NCBI GenBank assembly: GCA_030704615.1
Contig: CM060731.1
Coordinates: forward strand, 58,466,001-58,530,000
Reading direction: 5' to 3'
Length of the DNA: 64,000 bases
DNA from: Takakia lepidozioides
Lineage: Eukaryota > Plantae > Bryophyta
In this document: one piece after another, positions 4,113-59,259 of the stretch
Position numbering within the stretch: position 1 is the first letter of the stretch
Layout: each line of letters opens with the position of its first letter
Translations under genes and position numbers: made by a program
The notes under the pieces: model-generated
Database searches by the model: none
Seen by the model: the letters and a program-made list of their open reading frames with translations, nothing else
What the model was told of the DNA's origin: nothing

Positions 4113-5906
4113 TCATTCCTCCATTCTTCTCACCTTTGATTCAACATCCCACCTACCAGCTGCACCACATACATTTGACAATATCACATAAGCTGCAGGG
4201 TCCTGTGAATTCCAATTGAAAAGGCATTTTGCTGCACGTTCAGCTAGATGTACATTGTCATGAAGTCTGCAGGCACCAAGCAAGGCCCCCCACACCCCGC
4301 CATCTGGTTCAATTGGCATTTTGTTAATAAAGTCCTCTGCTTCATCCAATTGCCCTCCACGGCCAAGAAGGTCCACCATGCAGCCAAAATGTGCCACTAC
4401 AGGAGTGAGGCCATGATCTCTATACATGGAATTAAAGTAGTGAAGGCCTTCATCCATTAGGCCCATATGGCTACACGCTGAGAGAACAGATGTAAAAGTG
4501 ATACTGTTGGGCTTCAAGCTTTCATTTTGCATTTGTTCATATAGTTGGAGGGCCTCCCTACCACAACCATGCTGGGCATAGCCTGCAATGATTGCATTCC
4601 ATGAGACCAAATCTCGTTTGAGCATACTGTCAAACACTTGGCGTGCATCCTTCATGCTCCCACATTTGGCATACATGTCCACAAGAGTGTTGTCCAAATT
4701 GATATGTGAAGCAATTCGAGCTTTAATGATGTTGGCATGGACCTCATTCCCCTTTTCTAGGACTCCTAGGCTGGTGCATGCATTGAGAACACAAATGTAC
4801 GTTACCCTATTGGGTGTCACCCCATCTTGTTGCATCTGCTCATACAAATCGAAAGCCTCCCTACCAAGCCCATTCTGGGCGTATCCTCCAATCATTGCAT
4901 TCCATGAGACCACATTTCGTTGAGCCATATTGTCAAACACTTTGCGTGCATCCATCATGCTCCTGCATTTGGCATACATGTCAGCAAGGGCAGTCCCCAG
5001 GATGATATCTGGTACAATTCCAGCTTTGATGATGGCAGCATGGACCTCTTTGCCCTTTTCCAGGGCTCTTAGGCTGGCACATGCAGTGATAATGGACGTG
5101 AACATGAATGTGTTGGGCAAAACCCTGTCCTGTTGCATTTGCTTGTAGATCTCGAAAACCTCCTGACTGCAACCATTCTTAGTATATCCTGCAATCATGA
5201 CATTCCACGTGACCTCATTTCGTTGGGGCATGTTGTCGAACACTTGTTGTGCATCATTCATGCTCCCACATTTGGCATACATGTCAGCAAGGGCAGTCTC
5301 TAGAGTAAGATCTGGGACAATTCCGGCTTTGATGATGTCAACATGGACTTCTTTGCCCTTCTCTGGGATTCCTAGACTGCCACACGCGTTGAGGATGCAA
5401 ATGAACGTGACAATATCAGGCACTACCCCTTCCTGTTGCATTTCCTCGTAGATCATGAATGCCTCCTTGCCACAATCATGTCTCGCATATCCTGCTATCA
5501 TAATATTCCATGTAGACAAATCTCGTTCAGGCATGTTGTCAAACACTTGGCGTGCATCTCCCACACTCCCGCACTTTGCATACATGTTGACAAGGGTGTT
5601 CACTAGACAGATGTTTGGCTTGAATTCACTTTCAATAATGTGGCCGTGCACCTTCTTTCCCCCAGCTAGGTCTTTCCTATTTATACACTCCTGCAAGAGA
5701 GAGACATATGTATTGGAGTCCACTTGAATGCTTCGTTGGTTCAAAATATGTGGCGAATCTTTCAGTTGTCCTGCCCTACATATTGTTCCACAAGTGCCAG
5801 AAGAGTTCCTCTTGATTCCCTCTCTCAGTGCTCTTTCTGAAGTAAAGTTGCCCCTGCCGCTAGTCTGATGATTGACAGACAACTGTGCATGCTTCAAACC
5901 GGCCAT
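4113..5906 (-). CDS. PLS-class pentatricopeptide repeat protein ending in E domain (organellar RNA-editing-factor type)
   Basis: Open frame of P-L-S triplets (LVDMYAKCGS..DARQVFD, VSWNAMIAGYAQHG, TFICVLNAC), then P2-L2-S2 and E1/E2 (VWGALLGACRLH, YVILSNV..AAGRW). Start placed at ATG 5906 (MAGL) by similarity to the paralog at 28495; an in-frame upstream ATG exists at 5984. Confidence 0.9.
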   Translation of the reverse strand: MAGLKHAQLSVNHQTSGRGNFTSERALREGIKRNSSGTCGTICRAGQLKDSPHILNQRSIQVDSNTYVSLLQECINRKDLAGGKKVHGHIIESEFKPNICLVNTLVNMYAKCGSVGDARQVFDNMPERDLSTWNIMIAGYARHDCGKEAFMIYEEMQQEGVVPDIVTFICILNACGSLGIPEKGKEVHVDIIKAGIVPDLTLETALADMYAKCGSMNDAQQVFDNMPQRNEVTWNVMIAGYTKNGCSQEVFEIYKQMQQDRVLPNTFMFTSIITACASLRALEKGKEVHAAIIKAGIVPDIILGTALADMYAKCRSMMDARKVFDNMAQRNVVSWNAMIGGYAQNGLGREAFDLYEQMQQDGVTPNRVTYICVLNACTSLGVLEKGNEVHANIIKARIASHINLDNTLVDMYAKCGSMKDARQVFDSMLKRDLVSWNAIIAGYAQHGCGREALQLYEQMQNESLKPNSITFTSVLSACSHMGLMDEGLHYFNSMYRDHGLTPVVAHFGCMVDLLGRGGQLDEAEDFINKMPIEPDGGVWGALLGACRLHDNVHLAERAAKCLFNWNSQDPAAYVILSNVCGAAGRWDVESKVRRMEE

Positions 5907-7464
5907 CCTGCAGGATTCAGATCTGTTAATTACAACATCTATCCTCAACCACATAAAATATCTCCCAGCTCCTAGGTAGTCCATGGAAAGGACAGGCTTC
6001 TTTGCTAAAGGGGGACAGACGTCCTATTTTGAGGACAAACTGTCCCCAATCAGTTTCTGTGAGTTAACCCCTGAATCATCATTACATAGTACCCATTGTG
6101 TCTTCGATCTGGAGCTGCATTGTTTACATCGATATCATCAGCAGGTTGTTGTGTCATGGCAGCAAGCTCCTATGTCCCGCAAGGTTGGTTCGACCAGCTA
6201 CCAATCCAAAAGACCTCCGTTGCGCGTTTAACTGAGTCAGGCAAGCTTCGACTTCTCTGTGAAAAGCAACAGGGCAGCTGAGGAGCGTAACTTCAACATC
6301 AGCCTTGTCATAGACAAGCTACGGCTACCAATGCTCCAAGCAACCCTTTTACAACCTACTTTGATGCCCTGCACACCCTACTAACAGCAACGTCAAGATT
6401 CGCTTCTAGAGCTTTTCACAACGTTGATCTGGACACTACACCCGGTCCATAGAATCTATCAGGCTAGCTTCACTCAAAAGGCCTCACCTTCTCAAACCTG
6501 TTGTCCCACCTGTGTATTGTGTCTGAGAAGAACACCTGCCAGAGCCGTTCTATGCTCTTTCGCTCATCTGCGCGCAAGAATTGTAAGACCAAGATAGTTT
6601 TCCAGCTTCAGCTTGCCTCAGTCTCAAAGTAGGATCGCCATTGCAGCGCTTTTGAGAACATTTCTGTAAAGTACTCTCGCTCTCTCTTTCAATGAGTGGA
6701 ACAAGAGAAATGCATCTTCATTTCAGAATTTTCCGGAGATACTTTAGGAGCTGACGGCACGAGTACAAGCGAGTCGTCACACTCCACAACAAAGTGAACT
6801 TCTTCGTTCAAAACGGGTACAGAATTCTGCTGAAATTGGGCGACTGCAATACGTAGCCATCACAAGTTGGACGCCGAAAAACGAGTTCTATGTCCACACC
6901 TTTCTTCGCTTTCATTCCAGTATCAGAGGGCCTCATAGCCATCGCCAGCGACGCCCTGGGACCCAGCTTTTCAAACCCGGCTAGCCATATGCACTCCAGA
7001 GCCTGGCCCGTTGCAATGCTGCATGATGTGGGGTCTCCCTCCCATCCAGCGCAGGGAGAGCACAGGGCCTTTGGTTTTGCCCATCCGTGCGCGCTCCAGA
7101 GGCCTCCGCAGCCCCCACCCATTCTTGTGCTCACTTCTTCTTCTTCTTACTTGGATTCCGCGCATCACTCTCTACACGTCCCCAATTTTTGGTTGGGATT
7201 ACGTAGACTTAGGGTACTAGGCCCACTCACTGCGTATGACCCTTCACTGCGCAGGTGAGGTGACGCCTTAATCTGCGCAACCGGCTATGTATAGGGTAAC
7301 AGAAGCCATAACTTATTCATATGATCATATTATGGTGCAAAATTTGGACCTAGGGGGAGGTTGGCAAGTTGGCTTCAAAACCCAATTTACAAAACCCAAT
7401 ACACTGCATTGAAGTGTTGGGCACAATGAGCCTATATAATCTTCGTAAAACCAAGTATCATTGC

Positions 7465-12114: not shown

Positions 12115-12420
12115 GCTACAACAAACTCATGGCTATGAAAAACCACACTGACCAGAGCTCTGGCATTCTAACTAATAATGTAGGAGAGAATATTTCACAC
12201 GGACGTGAGATTTTCCCCCTCCACATAAAGTTAGCTCCACGGAACAACCAATGTCCTGGCATATCTGCTACAACAAACTCATGGCTATGAAAACCACACT
12301 GACCAGAGCTCTGGATTCTAAACTACTAAATGTAGGAGAGAATATGTTCACACGGACGTGAGATTTTCCCCCTCCACATAAAGTTAGCTCCACGGAACAA
12401 CCAATGTCCTGGCATATCTG
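12115..12420 (-). repeat. Two tandem copies of the MACPF C-terminal coding end plus 3' UTR
   Basis: The ~150-bp units 12115-12266 and 12267-12420 repeat 12421-12530 (DMPGHWL...KYSLLHY*) with indels. Confidence 0.9.
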
Positions 12421-28494: not shown

Positions 28495-30573
28495 ATGGCA
28501 GGGTTGGATCAGGCAAGAGTATTTGTTGGACAAAAAACTGATGGTAGAGGTAGAACTTCCACCACCACCACCACCACTGCCACCACTTTTGAAGGAGGGC
28601 AAAGAGAGCGAGTTAACAGGAACTCTTCTGGCACCTTTGAGGATGTATGGATACCCTGTAAGGCAGGACAATTGAAAGAGGCGATGCACATTTTAAACCA
28701 ACAAGGCAATCGGGTGAAACCCAAGATGTATGTTGACATCTTGCAGGAGTGCATTGATATGAAAGACCTAGCACTGGGAAAACAGGTGCACGCTGACCTT
28801 ATTAAAAGTGGATTCAAGCCAAATATTTTTCTGTTGAACACCCTTATCAACATGTATGCCAAGTGTGGGAGCATGGTGGATGCACGCCAACTGTTTGACA
28901 AAATGCCTGAACGAGATATGTTTTCGTGGACTATGGTGACAGCAGGATATGTCAAGCATGGGCATGCTAAGGAGGCTTTCAACATCTACAAGCTTATGCA
29001 ACTGGAAGGTGTAACACCCGACAGGGTGATGTTCATTTGCATTCTCAATGCTTGTGCCAGCCTAGGAGCACTGGACAAGGCCAAAGAGGTTCATGGTGAC
29101 GTCATCAAAGCTGGCATTGCATCATATATCAATCTTGAAAATGCCCTTGTTGACATGTATGCAAAATGTGGGAGCATGGAGGATGCGTGTCAAGTGTTCC
29201 AGAGTATGGCTAAACGAGATGTAATCTCATGGAACACCATCATTGCAGGATATTCTCAGCATGGGTGTGGTTGGGAGGCCCTTAATCTCTATGCGCAAAT
29301 GTGCCAAGAAGGGTCGAGACCCAACAGGGTCACATTCATTTGTGTTCTCAATGCTTGCGCCAGCCTTGGAGCCCTGGAAAAGGGCATGGAGGTACATGCT
29401 GACATCCTCAAAGCTGGAATTGTGTCTTACATCAACCTGGAGAATGCCCTTCTTGACATGTATGCCAAATGCGGGAGCTTAAATGCTGCACGACTGGTGT
29501 TCAACAATATGGCAAAACGAAATGCTGTTTCATGGAGTTCGATGATTTCAGGATATACCCAGCATGGGTGTGGTTGGGAGGCTTTCAAAATGTATGAGAA
29601 AATGCTACTGGGAGGGATGATACCCGACCAGGTGACCTTCGTTTGCATTCTGAATGCATGTAGCAGCCTTCGAGCCTTGGAAACTGGCAAGCAGATCCAT
29701 GCAGACATCATCAAAACTAGGATTATAGCAGATAATTTTTTGGAGACCGCCCTTGTTGACATGTATGCCAAATGTGGGAGCTTGAAGGATGCGCATCAGG
29801 TGTTTGAAAATATGATTAGTCGAAATGTGGTCTCATGGAATGCCTTGATTGCAGGATATTCCCAGCATGGGTGTGGCAGGGAGGCTTTTAAAATCCATGA
29901 ACGGATGCAACAGGAAGGGGTGACACCCGATGGGGTCACATTCATTTGCCTTCTCAACGCGTGTGCCAGTCTAGGATCAGTGGAAAAGGTCAAAGTGTTC
30001 CATTCTGAAATCATCAAAGCTGGAATTTCTTCGTTTGTCAATTTGGAGAATACCCTTATTGATGTGTATGCCAAATGTGGGAGCATAAGGAATGCACGTC
30101 AGGTCTTCAACACAATGGCTCAACGAGATGTGGTCTCATGGAGTGCGATGATGGCAGGATGCGCCCAGCATGGGTGTGGTAGAGAGGTCATGCAACTATT
30201 TGAACAAATGCAAATGGAAGGCTTCAATCCAAATGCTATCACTTTTATCTCTGTTCTCTTTGCATGTAGCCATGCGGGCCTAGTTGATGAGGGCCGTCAC
30301 TACTTTGATTCCATGAGTCGAGACCATGGCCTCACACCCTCAGTGGAGCATTTTGGATGCATGGTGGACCTTTTTAGCCGTGCAGGGCGATTAGATGAGG
30401 CAGAGGAATTTGTTTACAAAATGCCAATCAAACCAGACTCTTCCATGTGTGGGACCTTGCTGTCTGCCTGTGTAATGCATGGTAATGTGGAGCTAGCAGA
30501 ACGTGTCTCTAAATTCATTATGAAATGGGATCCACAAGATCCTGCAGCTTATGAATTACTACATCTATGCTGA
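28495..30573 (+). CDS. PLS-class PPR protein (692 aa) truncated within the E domain
   Basis: Uninterrupted ORF of P-L-S triplets, P2-L2-S2 and E1. A frameshift at PAAYELL leads to a stop; (ACC)n encodes a poly-Thr tract near the N-terminus. Confidence 0.9.
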   Translation: MAGLDQARVFVGQKTDGRGRTSTTTTTTATTFEGGQRERVNRNSSGTFEDVWIPCKAGQLKEAMHILNQQGNRVKPKMYVDILQECIDMKDLALGKQVHADLIKSGFKPNIFLLNTLINMYAKCGSMVDARQLFDKMPERDMFSWTMVTAGYVKHGHAKEAFNIYKLMQLEGVTPDRVMFICILNACASLGALDKAKEVHGDVIKAGIASYINLENALVDMYAKCGSMEDACQVFQSMAKRDVISWNTIIAGYSQHGCGWEALNLYAQMCQEGSRPNRVTFICVLNACASLGALEKGMEVHADILKAGIVSYINLENALLDMYAKCGSLNAARLVFNNMAKRNAVSWSSMISGYTQHGCGWEAFKMYEKMLLGGMIPDQVTFVCILNACSSLRALETGKQIHADIIKTRIIADNFLETALVDMYAKCGSLKDAHQVFENMISRNVVSWNALIAGYSQHGCGREAFKIHERMQQEGVTPDGVTFICLLNACASLGSVEKVKVFHSEIIKAGISSFVNLENTLIDVYAKCGSIRNARQVFNTMAQRDVVSWSAMMAGCAQHGCGREVMQLFEQMQMEGFNPNAITFISVLFACSHAGLVDEGRHYFDSMSRDHGLTPSVEHFGCMVDLFSRAGRLDEAEEFVYKMPIKPDSSMCGTLLSACVMHGNVELAERVSKFIMKWDPQDPAAYELLHLC

Positions 30574-36600: not shown

Positions 36601-39600
36601 CATTCATTTAAGCTCGTGAAACAAACTTATGCAAGTTAGGAGATGCTGATGAAAAGTGTGGGCTGTGTGGTGGTGGTGGGGGGGGGGGGGGGGGTTGGGG
36701 TTGAAGGTTAACAATGTATTAAGAGCTCAGCCAAGCTATGCCAGAGATCTGGATGCTATGGTAGGGCCGTTGATGCAGGCGATAAACACAATGCACCACC
36801 GCTGCTACTCAATTATTGAGGTGGGTGTTTTATTCCAACTTTGATTAGATCTGCTTTGGTTCATCAATGACCGGTTCGTTTCTCCATTTGCCCTTGTGGC
36901 CGCATTTAAAGTGTATGAACAGTGTCTGTGACCATGGTGGACCCTGTGTTGAGGTGCAATTCTGTGGTGAGAATTGGGTTGCAAGTTCCCAGTCTAGAGA
37001 AGATGTCTGTTTTAGGGAGCACATCAGTAGGTGGGTACCTTGATAGAAGAGGATTGTGCGGTTGTTTTGTCTAGCTTTCATGTGTGCTTGACTCATGGGG
37101 GCTCTGTTCTACTGCCACCTGGCATCTTAGAGTGCTGGAAGAGCCCTACAGTTTCGAAGTAGATGTTCCTGTAGGTTCTCTGTTTAAGAGCAGCTGTTCA
37201 GTGGGAAAAGGAAAGGGTGGACTCCTGCTGAAGCAAGCGTAAATTATGGTGTCTCTTTACCCTGAAGGGCTACTGCCTTCGGTTTGGAAGGTGGACTGTA
37301 CGATAGACACTTTGCAATGGTTGAATGAACTGCAGATATGTCCAGTATGTTCCTTTGTATCTGAAAAGCCTGTGCTTGCATATATTTTTGACTGGCTGGG
37401 TTTGTATGTTGGATGGACACAGTCCCAAAAGGGTCAGTTAGGCCACGACGTCATGGGGGTGAAAGCTATGAAGAAACAGTTGATAGAGGTGAGTTGTTTC
37501 CTTTTTCCTTTTGAGTAGCCCAGCCCCTAGTGGAGAGCAGTAGATGATGGACTAAGTTGGATGCGCAGATTGATCCCTCACCAAAGGCTGCCAAGGTTTC
37601 CCAGCATTGGCTCTCAGCATTGGCTCTCAGCATTGGCTGAAAGAGCTTCCATGTGAGTTGAGTGAAATAGTATGGACATTTACAGAGGACATTATGGGGA
37701 GACAATTATGATGGTTTTATACTCCACACCCACTATGTATGACATAGCATATGAGCTTCGTGAATGTCTGTCACCGTTTAACTTTCCTTCTCTCAGGTAG
37801 ACCAAGTATTGGACTGTGTTTCTGCTCAATGGTGAGTGAGGGAGAAGTCAGCATCCAGATCATGAATTGTGAGTGTGACCTGTAGTCAAAAGGCAAAATG
37901 ATGGATATTTTGGTTGGCAGGTAGTGGAGTATTTGGACGATGTTATTATGGCCCTCAATGCTTTTGTTGGTGCCTATCCACCAGCTGCTTCAATATTGGT
38001 CTCTGCTGGAGTTTCTGAGTAATTTCTCTGCTCTCTCTCTCTCTATATCGCTGATGTACCCCTCAATATTTACTTTTGAACTCTGGCTCTGCCATATGCT
38101 AAATTGCTGGCAGTGGGATACTCACTCTCCTGGGGCTGCCCTTGGGGTTTCAAGTTTTAACCTACCCGTGTGTGAAACTGTGTGACGTTTCCACCTTGCT
38201 CATGCACGGCCAATGATAACTTGTTACAGGTGTGATTCATTTAAGGTCTGGGAGTTACATGTCAGGAAGCACAGCACTATTTCTGATCGGGTTTCAACGT
38301 AGACATGTCGGTTCAATCAGATGCAGTCGTTTACGTACTGCTTACCATTGTGCCCCTCTCCCCCTCCCCCCCAGTTCTTTTCTCTTCGCCCGTTTCTGGT
38401 GGCCACATAGTGGGTTTCATCTACTTCAACTCTTCAGTGTCTGAAATTCAGTATCCGTCTCTTTGCTGATGTATTTCTCTCTCTCTCTATCGTCGTTCAT
38501 CGGATTATATTCTGGTCTGACTGGTGCTTATCGAAGTAAGAATTCTCCAATTGTTGTGCAGGAGCAGAGTTGACTCGTTTCTTCCCTCTCTGGCATCCAT
38601 CCATGACTCTATGTTACCAACTCTTTGCATGGGGTTTGCTGCCCTTGGCAGCCCACCCTCATCATCTTCCAGGACATGGAACTCTAAGGAAGATATAGAG
38701 GTGGCTGCTCAGCTGCTAGTGAAACGACTGAAACTGAGACTTATCGATTTTTCCTGGAACTTGTTGCGTACATGCTATCTTGGTGAGCAAGCTCTTGAAG
38801 ACGCAGATTTTCCTCCCTTACGTGTACAGCAGGGCAGAGATGGAGGGAGTAAGGCCACAGAGTATCCAGCAATGAAGGGCAATCTGGTGCAAGCTGCCTT
38901 GGCCCTAGCTTTGGGGTCAGGTGAGAGTGATGGAAACGGAACCCTGGCATCTGTTGCCCCTGTTAACCAAATGTCAACCACTGGGGCTTTGTTGCGAAGT
39001 ATTGACAGAAGGCATGGGCTGCGTCAGATAATCCACGAGCTCTGTCAAAGTGGTATGTACATTGTTAGTACAGTAATAGATGTGGCTATCTCACTTTATC
39101 TTTGCTTACCTGTCAAGTTCGGAGTTCACTATGCTCGAACATATTCATTAGAGTAGTAAAGGTCGTGCTTTGAGACTTGAAGCTCCACTTGAGCTCCTTA
39201 AAAATAAGGAGCTTCTTTGTTGCACAGGCGAGAAACTGAGTGTTTTATTGGCTGGTTGCAGATGCTATTCTACTTGATGATGCACAGTGTGAGCGTCTAC
39301 TTGCATTAATTGCTGATAATCATCCTAGCAAGTTGCAAACTTCCAGGAGACAGGCTGCAAATGTCTCAGATTTGCCAAAACCATCAATTCCAGATCAGAA
39401 GGATGAGGCAGTTTTCCTGCAATCGAAAATCAGCCAAGTCAAGGATCTGTTCCCTGGCTATGGAGATGGATTTGTAGCTGCATGCCTGGAAGCCTATGAC
39501 AATGACCCTGAGAAAGTGATTCAACAAATTTTAGATGGCAAACTTCACCCAGACCTTGCATCTCTGGACGTCACACTTTCAAACAAACCCAGCTACACAG

Positions 39601-41016
39601 CCAACAACAGCAGAGATAAAGGAAAAGGGAAGCTCGTAGAGGAGCCAAGTGTTTATGAGAAAGGTAGAATCCTAAAATCTGAAGAAAGAGACATTACTGC
39701 AAGAGTTTTGCCACTGTCATCGACAGGGACTACGGCTGGGGTTGCTGACGTGGGACTGTCCAGTAAAGGGCCACCACCTGACTCCCCACTTGTATCACAG
39801 GAGGGGATGAAGGGTCAACCTGCAAGCTTGAATCATGGGCGATTTATGAGGCGTGATAAGGTAGATGATAATTTCAATGAGCTTCTAACTAGGAGAGCAA
39901 AAGATGAAGCATTCTCTGCAACAGTGAGGGCTGGGAAGCAATATGACTATGAGGATGAGTATGATGATTCCTTTGATGACTTGGCCGGTACATATCTGAC
40001 CAATTTTGGGGAAGAGGAGACTGAGAACTTGGCTGATTTGAGTAAGCGCCGCTCCATGCACAGTGACATCTCACAGGAGGACTCTGATTGGGCAACCAAC
40101 AGTAGACGACGGCCTTCGGGAAGGGGTACGTTGCACCAAGTAGTACCAGGTGATATCTCAAACCAGAGCTCTAACAGGAGGACAAACAATGGACAAGGTC
40201 CTTCCAAAGGAATTTTATCGCTGCCAAACCAGTTGGGCATGGGACGTAATGGTTCAGGTAATTCGGACAGAGGAAGCAACTCCGGGACCTTGGAAAGAGG
40301 GAAACTGGGTGAAAGCCGTACATATGCCGTTGTGGCACCTAGTAGCAGCAGGTTGGCGTCACTTAGTCAGAGACCAGCTGGCCTAACTACATCAACTAAG
40401 CCAGTAGGTCAAATTGAAAGTCCAAGTGCACCAAGTGGGCCCACTGATGACCAATCTTTCTCCACAGCATCAAATGGGACCAGCCGCACCCAGCAAAAGA
40501 GAGGGAAGGGGAAAATTGAATCCACTACCAAGTTCTATCTTAAGGATGGGAAACTCTACAACTATAAGGTAAGACTGTCGTTATGTTTGGAAGTTAAAGT
40601 ACTTGGCTAAGTTCTCAGTACAGTGCTTAGCCACATGAGTTTTTTTCCCTAATCTCGCCCCATATTGTTTGTAGACTTGCTCACCTACATTCTTTGAGTA
40701 CTGTATGATGGATTCTTGTTCCTGGTGGTGCTGTTTCTAGGTGGTGGGTGCAGAGGCCGGGTTCGCAAGTGTGGAAGAATTTGAAGCTTCCAAGAGAGAG
40801 GAAGAAGCAATACTCTTTGGGCTGGGATCTGGGGGGAATGTACCTGCTGCAATGGCAGAAGCAAGGGATAGTGGAAACTTTGATGGAGGGACTTCTATGG
40901 CGGCAGCTGGTCGTGGACCCCCAAACATAGGGCACCACTTAAAGAAAGATAACAACAAACATCGGAGAAAGGAGCAGGCAATGAAAAAGCATTTTGGTGG
41001 CCTTGCGGGGTTGTAA
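33677..41016 (+). CDS. ASCC2: Activating signal cointegrator 1 complex subunit 2-like (CUE-domain ubiquitin-binding protein), ~1062 aa, 10 exons
   Basis: Phase-consistent GT-AG exons: 33677-34199, 34672-34831, 35952-36010, 36194-36288, 36707-36820, 37423-37488, 37921-38018, 38562-39052, 39262-40568, 40741-41016 (3189 nt). Motifs FLPYLP, RRWYD, LSRRVFMLLYRL, LDLPKLLDVCAVY, CUE (ISQVKDLFPGYGDGFVAACLEAYD.DPEKVI), YEDEYDDSFD and C-terminal HRRK..AMKK. Confidence 0.9.
37231..37295 (-). mobile_element. SINE 3' fragment in ASCC2 intron 5
   Basis: AGCGTAAATTATGGTGTCTCTT...GGGCTACTGCCTTC...GGAAGGTGGAC matches the SINE family. Confidence 0.65.
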
Positions 41017-45506: not shown

Positions 45507-45794
45507 CGAGTGTCCCTATAAAAGTCCTTGCAACACACCGAGCCTTCCACAGATGCTGAGCAACGGAGGGTTTCAAATTTGAATTGTAAAAAATAACCAA
45601 CATGCTAAGAAAAAAAAACTTATACAATATGTAGTAGCCAACGGGGTGGGAAGAAGTTGGCATTTTGATATTTCAAAGTTGTCCCCATTTTTTATGGGCG
45701 AGTGGAGATTAGCACATGATGGTCCTGTCGCAATTTTCCCAGGTTATCTTGCACTCTAATAAGCAGCTTCGACCAAGAAAGTAGAAAGTATGAG

Positions 45795-48700
45795 CACAAA
45801 GCCATCTTTAACCCTACGCTCAACCCACCAATTGACTGCCTTAAACATCAGCTGGGCCATTTCTTGTCAAGCCCCATTGATATCAACAAAGAAATATGGA
45901 TACAAGCATCCGCTTCCTATACGCCCGCTATCACGAACTGCCTACACCCTGAGCACCACCACCCCAACTGTTTATGTAAAGTCAAGCATTACCCATGGCA
46001 TGACCTCGACGGCTTTTCATTAGACAAACGTGGGATACCCACGGACCGCATACATGACCTATTCACGCTAGATCTCTATGACTATTGCCTTAAAGGTCTA
46101 TCTAAATCAAAAGCCCCTGGACCAGATATGATCCCTAACGCTATATTACAAGCGCTTGACCCCCATCTCCATACCCTCTTCTTCAAATTTTTCAAACTAT
46201 GTTACCAACTCAAGCGTATCCCACCCACATGGAAACATAGTCGCACCATCTTTCTATTTAAGAAAAGCGACCCTACTGACCTCGGTAACTATAAACCCAT
46301 AGCCCTAGCCAACACTATCTATAAATTGTTTACCAGCACACTAACCACACTGCTATCCAATTACGGAGAACAACACCATATTCTGAGTGACCCCCAAGAG
46401 GGCTTCCGAGCCATGCGTAGCACAACCCGTCAAATACAATATGTCCTTGCAGCCCTCGAAGATGCCAAGCTCACTATACAAGATATCTACCTCTTGTATA
46501 TAGACTTAAAAAATGCCTTCGGATCCTTAGACCATGCCAGACTACTTGCAATCATGACGGACCTCGGTTACCCCATCGATGCCATCCAACTCATTGGCAA
46601 CATCTATACCAACAACACTACGGAATACTCCGGCTCATATTTTGGTACTACCTCCCCTATTCCTATCCTACGCAGCACCATTCAAGGTGACACCCTCAGT
46701 CCATACCTATTCATTATCTTTTTAGAACCTCTCCTCAGATAGTTAGCACGCGAAAATCTCGGCTATCACTATAAAACCTCCCCTAGCGAAATCTTTGTTG
46801 CCGCATACGCTGACGACCTAGCTATCCTAGCTCACAAACCCCAACACCTCAACCAACAAGTCAGCAAGTTATCCCGCTTTAACGTATGGTCGGGCATGGA
46901 ACTTAACCTCCACAAGTGCACCGTTACCGCAGCAACCCACCACAGTAATCTAACAAAAACTGCGATTGCTTCCCATTGTAAACTCTATATCCATTACCTA
47001 AACAACCCCTTTCCCTTTTTAGGACCTGATGAGCCTTACACATACTTAGGCATCCAACTAGTCCCATCACTTACTTGGCATGTGCAAAAGACCACCACAC
47101 TTGCTAAGCTCTCTGACAAAAGCCTGGCTCTTCTTAAATCCCCTGTCTCCATTAGACCCAAACTGTCAATCATCAGCTCTGTGCTTAAGCCACAAGTCCA
47201 ATACTCTTTTCACGCCGCTCCTTTCTCCCTCCCGGATCTCAAAGTACTAGACAAACACATCACTCAACTAACCAAGCGAATATGTGGCTTACCTACCAGT
47301 ACTCCTAGTGCTCTCACCCAACTCTCGACAGACTGTTAGAGCGTTATTTCATTATCCTGAATCCTTGGTACCCAGTTACAAGAAGCTCTCAATGACCCTG
47401 GACGTCTGGGACTTATCTACCGGGGCCTTCTTAAATTCCTAGCCCACAAATTCAATGGACTACAATCCCTCCCATCTCTTCATTCCCAATCTTGCCTACA
47501 CTCCCCCACGGCACGTACACTATTCATCCTACGACAAATGCGTATCAGCATACAAACCGACCTACCCGGCTATCCTAACACGATATCACAGTTGGGACAC
47601 GCTCTAAATACCAGCCCATCCCTCTCCGACTTTGAACGTCTTCATCCCCGCCAAAAGCGTCCCCTCCTCACCTATTTCAAAGAACGGCATATCACTCATC
47701 TCACCCAACTTACCACCACCACCGGCACTCAACTTGTAACCCCGAGAGAATTCACACTCAAACACTCTCGTGCCACGGCCAAAACCTGCAGGTTCCTCCA
47801 ACACCTACGCACCCTACTCTGCCATCCATCTGCATTATGTACCCTTGAATGCGATCTTCCCTGCTCACTCTCCCCTCATACCCAACTCGACTTACTACCT
47901 GCCTACAGATCAGGTCCATCCCCCTCTATTCTCCACACGCTTAGGGCCTCCCAAACCTCAGGTACACATGGCACTAGAGACACCCCATCCACACCCACCT
48001 CCCCTATACCCTCTCCCCACTCGGATAGGGACTCCACCCAGACCCTTCCCGCCCACATCCATATGCGCTCCCTTACGCAAACTACTTCCACCCCAACTCC
48101 CCCCTCACCTAACACTCCTGCAACTCATCATGACCACCCAGATAACCCAGACGCATATGTTATCGAAGCCATCCTAGGTATTAAGACCCAAACTTCTACA
48201 GGCTCATATGGGGCCACATGTGTTGATACATATTACTTATGCCAATGGGCTGGCTACACAGCTGATGATAACTCATGGCAAATCAAGGATGACCTCTTTG
48301 GCTCACATGATGACTGCGACCCCGCCCACAATCTCACACTCCTCACCGCATTCCACAAACGTACCAACCTCGTGCATACCCACCAACAACATATCTCCCA
48401 AACCCAACCCAAGGATGCCCGTCACGTACATCAACCACTTACCGCCCCCAACGTACACATACACATTACTGAATGCAATCCAGATAAGGATATTTTGCAC
48501 ACCTCCCCCACAATCTGTCAAGGCCCTCGTATGTCCACTATCTACTCATTCAACGGCCGTTTTCTTGGCCTCATTCCCAATGACAGACTAGCATGGCTAT
48601 GGGCTAAATACTGTACTTCCTCCCCCTGTAACACTCAAATCCACCCACCCCACCAAGACTTCGCTACCACACTCAGTTGGCTTGTTACCCGCTATCTCCA

Positions 48701-51014
48701 AGACACTCCTCCCAAGAAACCCCGTTCTCTGACAAAACTTGTTACAAGCCTTTGCTCATATTACTATCCCCCCGGATATCCTCGCTCTGCTCATTACCAC
48801 TTTCGAACTCACTCGTTCATATTATTCCAGACCGCTTACATGCCCGATAGGAATCACAACTTTTGCCAGCCCCCACCCCCGAGACTACATCTTCGGAGCC
48901 ACCGGACATGCCATCCAACACGCATGGGCAGGGAGGGGATTTGCCCACCCCCACTTCAGACCCTTTCACACATGAGGCCCTCCAATGGGCCCGTATGGCC
49001 ACACAGTCATCCCCATCAAACGTCACGATCATTTTACTCACTCACCAAAAGCTATCCAACAGTCCCACCCCCTCCTACAATTCCCACCCGGCATAACACT
49101 CCTCGCCGCTATCGAACATAACCAACTCCGGTACATCCACACCCCGCCTCTCCCCAAATACCTTCGTTACAAAGAATCCACCCTTACCCTTCTCCTTCAT
49201 GTCCAACACACCACACACTCCACCATGCCTCCCACCTTCCCTGCCTTACTGAATCAACTCCTTAAGCGCACTCACAAGCTAAAAACCACCATCTACCCCC
49301 ACCATACCACACACCCAGTCCTCACATTTCCACCTGACCCACTCCCTAGGATTAACTTAAGCAAAGCATGGAAAAGGGCGCTCCTGCGCCCGTCCCCTAC
49401 CCAACCTACGTTTCCCCCGCCCCTCCCATCCTATTGCCAAATTATACCTCCCAAATTTCCTCCATCCCACTCCCACTACACCGACGGCTCCCTCACCGAC
49501 TCCCACGCTGGTTATGGAGTATACCATGCCGCTACCAATCAGGGCACCGCTCACAGACTTCCTGGTCCTGCTACCATACTTCGTGCAGAACTAATGGCAA
49601 TATTTGAAGCGCTCACCCAACTGTCTTCATTCTCCCCTCCACATTATATCTTCACAGACAGCCTCACCTCGCTCTTTCTCATCCGCAACCACCTCTCTTG
49701 CTCATCTTCTCACCATTTTCACTTTGACCGTAATCTCATCACAACCATCGCCAACATGGCTATCTCCATCAACCAACCCATTCACTTTATCAAAGTACGC
49801 GCACATATACGTATTCGGGGGAATGAGGCTGCCGACCTTCTTGCCCAGGAAGGTGCCGACGAACCCCCTGTTGACCCTACCAATGATCCCATCCACATAG
49901 CACATACCCACCCATTCTGGCTAATACACCCCCTACCCGACCCCTTGAACCCCGACCTATACGCAACCTTTTGAAAACCCTTACTCGAGAAGCCAATAAA
50001 CAAACCTCGGTATCTGCTAGCCACACTAAAATATACATACAAAAATGGACACAATCCGCAATACTCCATAACAAACTCTCAAACTACTTTTGGCACTCCA
50101 AAACAGCTACTGACGCCCAAATCAAACAGACGCTTAAATTCCAATACGCACAATATATGGGACATCAACGTAAATATATATTCTGGCCACGCCCTTTCCC
50201 TCGGGCCGCATTGTCTACTCTGTTCTCATACCCACCAGGAATGTGACACTTGGCCACACCTTCTTAGCGTACCCGGTCATCCACGGGCTTCATATAACCC
50301 GCCATAACCAAGCAGTCTGGCACATCCATAAACTTCTCCTACATCGCGCCGAGACAAGATGGTTCTCGCTAATCAACACTGACCACACCGTCCCACACTG
50401 GCTTCTCCTTTGTACTTGCTCCCACTCCCACTGCACCTGCCCCACCAGACTATGCCCGGACATGTTGCTTGTACATGGTTTACCTATAAATCCCCCCCCA
50501 CCCACCGCCCTTTGACCCCGAACCTTACCATCTACTTTATTGAGTTCACATACTGCCATGATCGATACCCCGCTGACTCAACGCTAGACAAATGGCTAAA
50601 ATATGCGCCACTAATCCTTGCGCTTCGACACAAGGGCTGGGTCACTGGTCCTTTGACGGTTATCACGGCTGGCACTAGAGGCGGCATTCATAACGCAGTA
50701 TCAATGCACTACACACTAACTTCAAACTCCCTATCCTTTCCATTCATAAATGTTTCAAAGCAATACACCTCACAACCCTCCGCTCCCTCACAGCCATTAT
50801 TACTAACAAACGTAAACTCGAATCTAACCCTTCTTTGGCTCCCGGGGTATCTAGGGTACCCTAGGTACCCCAAGTATCCACGGTACCTTGCTCCTCTAGA
50901 CTCCTAGTGTCCTATGGACACCTTTTTGGATGGGGCCCACCCCCGAGAGGGGGCAGTAGCCGTGAGACGAAATGGCTCTTAGTTATGCCGGCTTGGGCCG
51001 AAGTCTTCTCTCTC
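45795..51014 (+). mobile_element. 5'-truncated Dualen/RandI-like non-LTR retrotransposon: RT, chromodomain, MTase-like domain, RNase H, Zn knuckle, restriction-like endonuclease
   Basis: 13-bp TSD TAGAAAGTATGAG (45782-45794, 51015-51027). RT motifs KAPGPD, YKPIAL, QEGFR, DLKNAFGS, QGDTLSP, YADD (46806), YLGI. RNase H YTDGS/RAELMAI/FTDSL/KVRAH/GNEAAD. RLE motifs RHN..PD..IE..K..KY. (CT)n tail; several stops and frameshifts. Confidence 0.92.
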
Positions 51015-51544
51015 TAGAAAGTATGAGGGGGAGCTTTGATCTTTATGCTAGCCGTGTTTAAGGAATAGTCCCAAAACTGGGAATCATGCAGGCATTCCAA
51101 AGGAGATGATTAAGAGAGGTGCTCAGGGTCACGAGAGGTCTTCCCATTGCAATTGCCTGGCCTGCTGCCTTGCTTGGGGCCACTGACTTCATTGACAACA
51201 AATTGTCTGTTGTTGTTAGTAGATTTCATCTCCCTTTCTTTTTATCTGTTACTTGAATTCCTTGGTCATCAGCTCTAACTAATTAAGGGTAACTTAATAG
51301 GAGAAAACAGACACTTTGGATCGTGTTTATTGTCTACAACCATGTCTCAAATTGTGGCCAAATGATCATATTAGTTTGTTCATAGTTGAAATGCTGGGGC
51401 TCAACGTTTGACCCCTACTTCTAAAGCATTACCAACAACATATGAGGGACGGATGTATGTAGGATCAGATTCAATGTTCAAACTACAGTGTTCCAACTAA
51501 GGATCATAAATGGTGGCATATACAGCCCACCCTTGATTAAAAGA

Positions 51545-57079: not shown

Positions 57080-59259
57080 ATGACTGTCGAAGATGAAGGG
57101 GAAAAGCCTAGTGCCCCGGAGTCTTTCCGCTCGTGGTCTCTGCGAAAGCTGCTAGCAAGTAGCCGGGAAAGAGTGGAAGTATCTGAAACTTCGTCAGAGG
57201 AAATCACAACAAGAGGAAGAAAGATTAGAAGGACAGGAGGAGGGAGCCATTCCCCCTCACCTGTGTCTCCAATTGCAGGGAGCTTCATCACGCCTGTCAA
57301 AGCTATTCTCGCTCCATCGCAGACCTTCAGCCGTTTGAAAGAGGAAAGGGAGCAGTTGTCCCGGCAGACACCGTCTCCTAAAGAATCAACCTTGCGAGAT
57401 GGGATCACACTGCCTTTAGTAGGAGAGATAAAGTGGGAGACAGTCACGCACTTGGTCAAAGACTGGCTTCGGAACCCCAAGAACTTAGCACTTCTGCTAT
57501 GGGGATTTGCAGTAGGGGTGTCGGGTGCCATCCTTTTCATGGTTATGGTTGGGATGTTGAATGGGGTTCTTCCCAAAAAGGCCGACAGAGATTTGTGGTT
57601 TGAAATATCAAACCAGATACTGAATGCTCTCTTCACTCTCATGGTCCTCTATCTGCATCCCACAAGAATTCTTCACCTTGTGTGGTTGATTCGGTGGCGA
57701 CCTGAAGATATCGTCAAGCTTCGCAATGTGTATTGCAAGGGTGGCATGCGGAAGCCTCAAGAATGGGCTCACATGCTTGTGGTCGTTTTCCTACTGCACT
57801 TGAACTGTTTCTCTCAGTACGCCCTTTGTGGTTTGAACTGGGGCTACAGAAGAGCAAATCGGCCAGCAATTGGGGTAGGCATTTGTCTAGCTTCCGCCAT
57901 TGGGGCTGCAGCAGCAGCTGGGATTTACAACACCCTGAGTCCTCTTGGGAGGGACTTTGTAGCAGAAGATGGTGAGGGTGAGCATGATGAAAGTATTGAC
58001 CAATTAGAGAAGGGTCATTGCAGAAATCCACCATCATTGTTTCACTTGTCACGAACTTATAGGCTACTGGAGAGGAGGCTGTCTTTTGCATCAAGGGAGG
58101 GAAAACTTGTCGAGGATCCCCAGTGGCAAGGGGGCCTTTTCGGCTGCTGCGAAGATGCCACAATTTCTTGTGTCTCAACTGGTTGCTTTGTTTGTGTACT
58201 GGGATGGAATTTGGACCGGCTGGGGTTCGGCAATCGTTTCGTGCATATCATCACTTTTCTTCTCTTGTGCTCTGCCCCATATTTCGTTTTTGATCTGGCA
58301 GCAATCAACGTAAACAACAAGTATGATTTCTCAACCTGAAGTTTTGCTCTATACATACAGGGTGCTAATACTCATCCTCATAATCCCTAGCTATCAGTTA
58401 CACAGCATAACACATAAGGAAGTAAAGTCCCGACAAGATCACAAACAGAAGCACGGGGTGTGGAATTGTGAGGAGAGGAGGGGTAGAAAGGTAAATACAA
58501 TTCTACAATGGCACAGAGGGGTCTATATATGCAACTGCTGATGATTTGATCAGCTGTTTGTGTTCTTTAAGCAGGCTGTCTGTGGTCATCTCCATGAACT
58601 GTTATGATAGAGGTTAGGTTGATAGGACCCGCTTCTATCTTCTTCAAAAGAGCAATGGAACCCCTGCAAAACTGAACATTGTCTGGGCATCACTCACATG
58701 CTTGGGAAGGGTGCAAGCTTCTGAGAGGGTGGGGACACGGTCGTAATGTAGATGATGTTATGGACCAGCTGCTGTGTGCTGACGTGGGGTAACTTTTGGC
58801 AGGTATGTGCGACATAGCTTGGGTTATGCTGGCATCGTCTTGAGTGTCTTTGGGTTACTCTATGGGGGCTTTTGGCGGATTCGAATGAGAGAGAGGTACA
58901 AACTGCCTGCCCAAAAATGGTGCTGTGGGCAGCCCAACATGACAGATTGCACACAGTGGCTTTTCTGCGGCATATGCTCTCTTTGCCAAGAAGTTCGCAC
59001 CGCAGAGGCTTTTGACATCCGCGATGATAAATTCTATGTCAGGACTAAAGGTGTTAACACGCCCGGGCAGAGTTCGCCAGAGAGAAATTTGGGAGACGAT
59101 GTGACACATGTCCCCGCATCCACAATCCAACCCCTCCCCATTTCTGCTATGCTACCAATCAAAGAAAGTGAGTTGGTTGCAATGAAAGAGACAGTGTTGG
59201 TACCCCCAGCTCCTCAGATCCTCAACCATGTTGAGGAAGAGGATCTTTCTACAGGGTAA
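57080..59259 (+). CDS. PLAC8 family / DUF2985 membrane protein, ~565 aa, 2 exons
   Basis: Exons 57080-58320 and 58803-59259 (phase 2, GT-AG). DUF2985 motifs WLRNPKNLALLLW..VSGAILF, NQILNALFTLM and YCKGG.RKP.EW. PLAC8 motifs PQWQGGLFGCC, GGFWRIRMR and WLFCGICSLCQEVRT. Confidence 0.93.

Follow-up and report, generated by a model that had tools for sequence, protein, structure and literature searches.

In descriptions of the long interspersed elements (LINEs) of land plants, L1 and RTE are usually the only types named. The locus studied here raises the question of how a decayed LINE that encodes both a ribonuclease H (RNase H) and a C-terminal restriction-like endonuclease (RLE) is to be classified, and whether it is resident in the genome that carries it. 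The element occupies positions 45795–51014 (plus strand) of a 64,000-nucleotide stretch of contig CM060731.1 of the bryophyte Takakia lepidozioides (positions 58,466,001 to 58,530,000; this whole stretch is termed the window, and coordinates refer to it unless another contig is named). According to our analysis, it is very probably a dead, 5′-truncated insertion of a Dualen-type (dual-endonuclease) retrotransposon that lacks long terminal repeats (non-LTR retrotransposon), resident in a bryophyte-type land-plant genome. Dualen/RandI is defined by an apurinic/apyrimidinic endonuclease (APE) that occurs alongside an RLE within the same element, a combination known from this group only (PMC4640811, PMC9977147). 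The traits of the group recognized here are a CCHC knuckle with an RLE, an RNase H between reverse transcriptase (RT) and RLE, a repeat-ended 3′ tail, and an APE in the relatives; the full-length relatives' polyprotein reads APE, RT, chromodomain, PCIF1-like fold, RNase H, CCHC knuckle and RLE.

The boundaries of the 5,220-bp element are given by a target-site duplication (TSD): the 13-mer TAGAAAGTATGAG is present at 45782–45794 and again at 51015–51027 (13 bp each, no strand assigned), both copies directly adjoin the element ends, and the chance of such a 13-mer at both ends is about 1e-3 by our own rough estimate. The GC skew (200-nt bins) changes from +0.14 in 45600–45799 to −0.41 in 45800–45999 and stays near −0.3 to −0.7 up to about 50800; the jump at 45800 supports the 5′ end independently of the TSD, and the element is colinear with the related copies L004 and L008. 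The sense strand is poor in G (G 13.9%, C 35.4%). Since related copies, intact open reading frames (ORFs) included, are likewise G-poor (10.5–13.3%), the low G content is a trait of the family and not a consequence of decay. As an observation of its own, G makes up only 10–14% of the subclade's sense strand even in intact copies (element, L001, L004, L005), the element's family being C-rich and the relatives A-rich. The amino-acid composition of the proteins is also strongly different, with His, Pro, Thr and Ser in the element versus Lys, Asn and Ile in the relatives.

The coding region was read in three frames and contains at least five in-frame stops (46740, 47337, 47358, 48973, 49972) and no fewer than five changes of frame (near 48720–48733, 49960, 50200, 50270, 50512 and 50700); the copy is therefore dead. 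No second copy was found in the 64-kb window, and all similarity searches were run with stop-free pieces of the decayed ORF. The initial annotation of this locus, made from the sequence alone, had proposed a 5.2-kb element within a perfect 13-bp TSD and a multi-module decayed ORF. Both statements hold: the 13-mers that abut 45795 and 51014 are identical, and RT, chromodomain, methyltransferase-like domain, RNase H, knuckle and RLE were all detected in that order, with the proposed positions of CxxC (50212), RHN (50300), PD (50456) and IE (50539) exact on the three-frame reading.

The RT (45795–47336, plus strand as are all modules described below) is read in frame 0 with the single stop at 46740 and a YADD motif at 46806–46817 (Pfam RVT_1, E 1.6e-17). 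Among solved structures it matched R2 at E 5e-17 and human L1 ORF2p at E 3e-7; this comparison addressed the grouping with L1 that the initial annotation had raised as a possible objection, and since the RT is nearer to R2, L1 is excluded. L1/RTE as a class, whose sole endonuclease is of the APE type and in which L1 carries a poly(A) tail, was also rejected for the presence of the RLE and the absence of poly(A). When the whole library was searched with the RT piece free of stops, 298 matches fell below 1e-30, many of them ORFs of 2,400–4,200 residues with the RT in the middle, and the nearest 150 matches were dual-endonuclease ORFs. These included two named green-algal proteins, KXZ51275.1 of Gonium pectorale and GAB4813942.1 of Parachlorella kessleri; in the cluster of the latter a 2,582-residue member reads APE–RT–PCIF1–RNase H. 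Both species belong to the chlorophytes, and it is from chlorophytes that Dualen was described. Pfam analysis of seven large RT relatives recognized Exo_endo_phos (the APE), RVT_1, PCIF1_WW and RNase_H, and with local profiles the order APE–RT–PCIF1-like–RNase H–RLE was found in 33 of the 57 RT relatives of at least 1,500 residues; the other 24 were mostly ORFs ending before, or beginning inside, this five-module series (APE found in 44, PCIF1-like region in 49 of the 57). A feature search of the ESM Atlas gave generic RT clusters only. A maximum-likelihood tree calculated by a quick method from 132 RT cores (unrooted, midpoint only) placed the element in a clade with P0001/P0151 (L001), P0002 and P0003 (L004) at 99% support in the Shimodaira–Hasegawa-like approximate likelihood ratio test (SH-aLRT), and this clade was placed among rows with the five-module Dualen layout.

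The C-terminal half of the ORF begins with the RNase H at 49474–49857 in frame 1 (Pfam RNase_H, E 9.5e-14), which could be aligned to the RNase H of the relatives. It is followed by a decayed CCHC-type zinc knuckle (50212–50260), visible in frame 1 as CxxC..H with the last Cys lost at a frameshift, and by an RLE of the PD-(D/E)xK type that extends over three frames (50270–50861; RHN 50300, PD 50456, E 50542, K..KY at about 50590–50603, C-terminal helix to 50828). For the RLE the relatives' profile was needed, as the single-sequence search of the Protein Data Bank (PDB) with the element's RLE piece gave no match. This profile, termed A2, was made from the C-termini of 13 relatives and shows conserved CxxC..H..C, RHN, PD, E and K..QH motifs with an RRxLE helix at its end; against the PDB it matched R2 proteins only, in the CCHC/RLE region (E 1.3e-7 to 2.6e-3). 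The knuckle fits the start of A2 weakly, and the pieces of the element match A2 in order across the three frames (E 2e-11, 1.2e-12 and 1e-5), which bears out the R2-type RLE that had been annotated at the C-terminus.

Downstream of the ORF end at 50861 there is a 3′ untranslated tail of 153 nt (50862–51014) that ends in GTCTT + (CT)n and has no poly(A). It contains a hairpin at 50940–50953 (CCCCC-GAGA-GGGGG), common to L001 with 95% identity over 20 nt, and a terminal hairpin at 50989–51000 directly before the GTCTT + (CT)n end; over its last approximately 45 nt the tail can be aligned with that of L001, ending in (TA)n, and that of L004, ending in (TTC)n. One stem pair is changed on both sides between the element and L001 (C-G versus U-A), a comparison based on three tail sequences only. 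The RNA fold of the whole tail was no better than that of shuffled sequences (z −1.06), and the long-range stem of the predicted fold was not conserved in L001, so that the two local hairpins alone are considered here. Tails of RandI in green algae end in (ATT)n and (CTATTT)n (PMC3747384), so that the microsatellite-ended tails of the element, L001 and L004 match the reported RandI ends. Downstream of the L008 copy (L008:14770–14800) a short stretch looks like a tRNA T-arm in reverse complement; ARAGORN found no tRNA in the L008 tail.

The element copy itself has no APE. In the fuller copies of the same subclade the domain is present: L001 and L003 contain a 546-residue Exo_endo_phos ORF immediately upstream of the RT ORF, P0212 and P0164 carry APE and RT within one ORF, and in L008 (an ENA contig of 740 kb) the colinearity with the element extends from APE to RLE. 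In consequence, the missing APE is attributed to 5′ truncation of the kind that incomplete target-primed reverse transcription usually produces. The first codon of the element aligns to residue 809 of P0212, whose APE is located at residues 348–595; as judged from this alignment, about 800 codons (about 2.4 kb), the APE included, have been lost. The initial annotation had postulated such a loss and had suggested a search for an N-terminal APE in fuller copies, and both the start point and the upstream APE of the copies named above agree with it. In the distant relatives P0017 (3,777 residues) and P0018 (3,308 residues), OTU and Josephin domains were found far upstream of the APE. These are deubiquitinase-type cysteine protease domains, and the two proteins further contain more than 1,000 N-terminal residues without a domain match; in the N-terminus of the same-subclade P0212 no cysteine protease domain was detected, and the corresponding region is truncated off the element. 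The L001 copy (L001:8205–15186) and likewise L002 and L003, all JGI metagenome contigs, show a rearranged structure: the APE ORF and an 803-residue RT ORF lie on one strand, the PCIF1-like/RNase H/RLE half (an intact 749-residue ORF) lies on the opposite strand, and the linker/chromodomain part is missing. In L001 the (TA)n tail of the latter half adjoins the end of the RT ORF near 12400; the arrangement looks like a 5′-truncated copy set tail-on against another copy, or like an inversion.

One competing explanation is that the element is R2-like, or belongs to another RLE type with a single endonuclease (R2, R4, NeSL, CRE, Hero, Utopia), that an APE was never present and that the RNase H is incidental. 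The nearest solved RT structure being that of R2, the match of the RLE profile to R2 and the copy without an APE would all agree with it. However, in the nearest relatives (45–68% RT identity) an Exo_endo_phos domain is encoded upstream of the RT, within one ORF or element, and the sequence of the element begins inside an ORF, at the P0212 position given above, so that we consider this explanation very improbable. The R2 clade itself was rejected as a class on account of the RNase H, the relatives with an APE, and an insertion site that is not ribosomal DNA. The assignment to the Dualen/RandI type, which the initial annotation had made, is supported by the RNase H and the C-terminal CCHC/RLE in the copy and by the APE and RLE combined in one ORF of its nearest RT relatives.

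The second competing explanation takes the segment for contaminant DNA of algal or other origin, or assumes that the element arrived very recently by horizontal transfer and is not a resident of the plant genome. It could refer to the description of Dualen from chlorophytes and cryptophytes and to the fact that the named relatives are green algae. The window, in contrast, contains two long, intronless pentatricopeptide repeat (PPR) genes of the PLS type with an E motif, one of 623 residues on the minus strand (4113–5984) and one of 692 residues on the plus strand (28495–30573), together with other plant-like genes: a 456-residue ORF with a CUE ubiquitin-binding domain (39240–40610, plus strand) and a 419-residue ORF with a DUF2985 and a partial PLAC8 domain (57080–58339, plus strand) are probably host exons or genes. 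The E motif of PLS-type PPR proteins is typical of land-plant organelle RNA-editing factors, and, as judged from its gene content, the host contig is land-plant DNA. The PPR genes with their E motif, the genuine TSD and the heavy decay rule out algal contamination of the segment, a possibility that had been raised with the initial annotation; the heavy decay further indicates that the insertion is not recent, and the closest relatives comprise many diverged families. We regard contamination or very recent transfer as likewise very improbable. The view of the initial annotation that the element is a relict or was horizontally acquired is not established, although an ancient horizontal origin of the whole lineage is conceivable: the subclade includes many diverged families, with more than 60 clusters at 45–61% identity to P0151, and the lineage looks like a diversified resident rather than a relict. 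No report of Dualen in land plants was found in the open-access literature.

Between the RT and the RNase H the element contains two further modules. The post-RT thumb/linker (47361–48155), which includes a proline/threonine-rich insert and extends up to the chromodomain, was aligned with the intact ORFs P0158–P0161, in which the order is RT C-terminus, linker, chromo-like region and PCIF1-like domain. A Pro/Thr/Ser-rich stretch of about 55 residues (47895–48120), just upstream of the chromodomain, corresponds to a gap in this alignment and may be a lineage-specific disordered insert. The chromodomain itself (48156–48302) was recognized by Pfam Chromo (PF00385) with 28.8 bits versus a gathering score of 25.1, and its PDB sequence matches were chromodomains only (Chp1, MPP8, CDY, HP1, SUV39H1). 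According to the AlphaFold model (predicted local distance difference test, pLDDT, 80–85 over the core), all 50 of the 50 best Foldseek matches were chromodomains (probability 0.92–1.00, template-modelling score by target up to 0.69); the three aromatic cage residues Tyr, Trp and Tyr were read from alignments to Chp1. A homologous region occupies the equivalent place between RT and PCIF1-like domain in P0158–P0161, L004 and L008, where the third cage aromatic is missing and the similarity is below Pfam recognition. No Chromo match was obtained with Pfam in seven algal-type giant ORFs, and a single-sequence search found no chromodomain in any of 157 collected proteins; since the domain is confined to the element's subclade, it is regarded as a gain of that subclade. 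A metagenome scan with the linker/chromodomain alignment returned one short locus, L007. Capture of chromodomains has been described for LTR elements (PMC5348765), and no report of a chromodomain in any non-LTR element was found in the open-access literature; the chromodomain of the element is a convergent gain of a kind known until now from LTR elements.

The second module (48387–49389; frame 0, then frame 1 from 48733, with the stop at 48973) had initially been annotated as methyltransferase-like and can be specified as a PCIF1-like methyltransferase-fold domain. It is colinear in tblastn/tblastx comparisons with the PCIF1_WW-positive part of the relatives, in which the PCIF1-like region comprises about 360 residues between RT and RNase H and is recognized by Pfam PCIF1_WW. 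A single-sequence PDB search with the element's piece gave no match, so that here, too, the relatives' profile was needed: built from 21 relatives, it matched in the PDB only human and zebrafish PCIF1 (6irv, E 1.2e-13; 6irx, E 8.8e-11). A FASPLN-type motif is widely kept across the PCIF1-like regions. Motif IV, NPPF in PCIF1, reads AHPHF in the element; among approximately 56 relatives it reads NPEY in 14, NVPA in 7 and HP-type variants in about 12, and neither NPPF nor any other canonical [DNS]PP[FYW] motif was present in this set. The element was therefore not assigned to the catalytic PCIF1/CAPAM cap N6,2′-O-dimethyladenosine (m6Am) methyltransferases, AHPHF standing in place of NPPF, although the PCIF1 fold is recognized by profile. 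The conservation of the domain throughout the clade without a canonical catalytic motif suggests a non-enzymatic role, e.g. the binding of RNA or of the polymerase II machinery.

That the element is a composite, in which nested insertion or misassembly joined a LINE RT fragment to chromovirus (chromodomain) and DIRS-like (methyltransferase and RNase H) pieces, can be dismissed as the least probable of all explanations: chromodomains are typical of Ty3/Gypsy chromoviruses and a PCIF1-derived methyltransferase domain, probably inactive and with a substituted catalytic motif, has been described for DIRS1 (PMC4738411), but a single TSD and a uniform G-poor skew cover all 5.2 kb, the module order is identical in L004 and L008, the intact P0158 and P0159 run unbroken from the RT C-terminus through the chromo-like region into the PCIF1-like domain, and neither an integrase nor a tyrosine recombinase nor an LTR was detected. 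DIRS1-type tyrosine recombinase elements, which have split or inverted terminal repeats and no TSD, were rejected as a class in view of the 13-bp TSD, the LINE-type RT with its APE/RLE relatives, and Pfam scans of the pieces that gave no recombinase.

Several points nevertheless weigh against the assignment as a resident Dualen-type insertion. Clade membership is judged from the architecture and from metagenome proteins; the RT tree was obtained by a quick method and has a midpoint in place of a root; the APE is seen in the relatives and is absent from the copy; all relatives that were checked have a degenerate motif IV; and the roles of the chromodomain and of the PCIF1-like module are deduced from homology only.

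For a Dualen-type element, known non-LTR behaviour and the active Dualen of Chlamydomonas point to insertion by target-primed reverse transcription. One of the nucleases would nick the target, the RT would copy the RNA starting from its 3′ tail, and the RNase H would remove the RNA template; a second nick 13 bp off would give rise to the TSD, and an early halt of reverse transcription to the 5′ truncation. With less certainty, the chromodomain might tie the integration complex to chromatin methylated at lysine 9 of histone H3 (H3K9), as in chromoviruses, and the PCIF1-like module might bind the element RNA or the transcription machinery instead of methylating. A further, rather doubtful proposal is that a LINE lineage has independently taken up the strategy of the chromoviruses: through the chromodomain, H3K9 methylation would be recognized and target-primed reverse transcription directed to heterochromatin, while the PCIF1-derived module would recognize the cap-proximal end of the element's own RNA (and in the NPEY relatives perhaps still methylate it), so that the polyprotein would hold both ends of the template. 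If true, this would be the first case of a non-LTR element whose integration is guided by chromatin, and likewise the first of a retroelement that encodes a reader or writer of the cap adenosine.

As one dead copy, the locus itself is of modest practical value. A diversified Dualen lineage in a bryophyte would, however, extend the deep-branching dual-endonuclease group into land plants and provide plant material for the question of how LINEs went from RLE to APE. The chromodomain makes the target choice of a LINE testable against histone marks, and the putative non-enzymatic role of the PCIF1-like fold is open to assay.

Among the known systems, Dualen/RandI is the closest in architecture; Dualen was reportedly described from Chlamydomonas reinhardtii by Kojima and Fujiwara in 2005. 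The element's family shares with it a single giant ORF that encodes APE, RT, RNase H, CCHC knuckle and C-terminal RLE, 3′ short tandem repeats rather than poly(A), and insertion with a TSD; in distant relatives, domains of the cysteine-protease type are found upstream (the OTU and Josephin domains mentioned above). It differs in the land-plant host and in the chromodomain between RT and RNase H. The PCIF1-like module, present in nearly all relatives checked, is not mentioned for Dualen/RandI in the searchable open-access literature. A cryptophyte member of the group is Dualen-1_GCr (PMC5029228), and the active Dualen-4b_cRei produces flanking duplications of more than 50 bp at more than half of its active insertions (median 900 bp; PMC9977147), in contrast to the 13-bp TSD found here.

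With the R2 proteins (8gh6, 9dou, 9nl2) the C-terminal CCHC and PD-(D/E)xK endonuclease can be aligned, including RHN/RHD and K..KY. R2 contains N-terminal zinc-finger/Myb DNA-binding domains, has neither APE nor RNase H and targets 28S ribosomal DNA, whereas the element's family carries APE, RNase H, chromodomain and PCIF1-like fold, and the element is inserted at an intergenic site. In the chromoviruses of the Ty3/Gypsy LTR type, too, the integration machinery has a fused chromodomain; there it is located at the C-terminus of a DDE integrase, whereas the element has it midway along a LINE polyprotein that would integrate by target-primed reverse transcription. Group II chromoviral chromodomains lack the third cage aromatic, and in this respect they resemble the chromo-like regions of the relatives, in contrast to the full cage of the element.

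By profile, the PCIF1-like module belongs to the clade of cellular PCIF1 and the DIRS1 methyltransferase domain, and it shares the substituted catalytic motif with the latter (PMC4738411). Cellular PCIF1, unlike the element, possesses a WW domain and NPPF. DIRS1 combines a Gypsy-like RT with a tyrosine recombinase in the order RT, RNase H, methyltransferase domain; the LINE described here has a LINE-type RT, the order RT, methyltransferase-fold domain, RNase H, and, at the level of its family, both APE and RLE.

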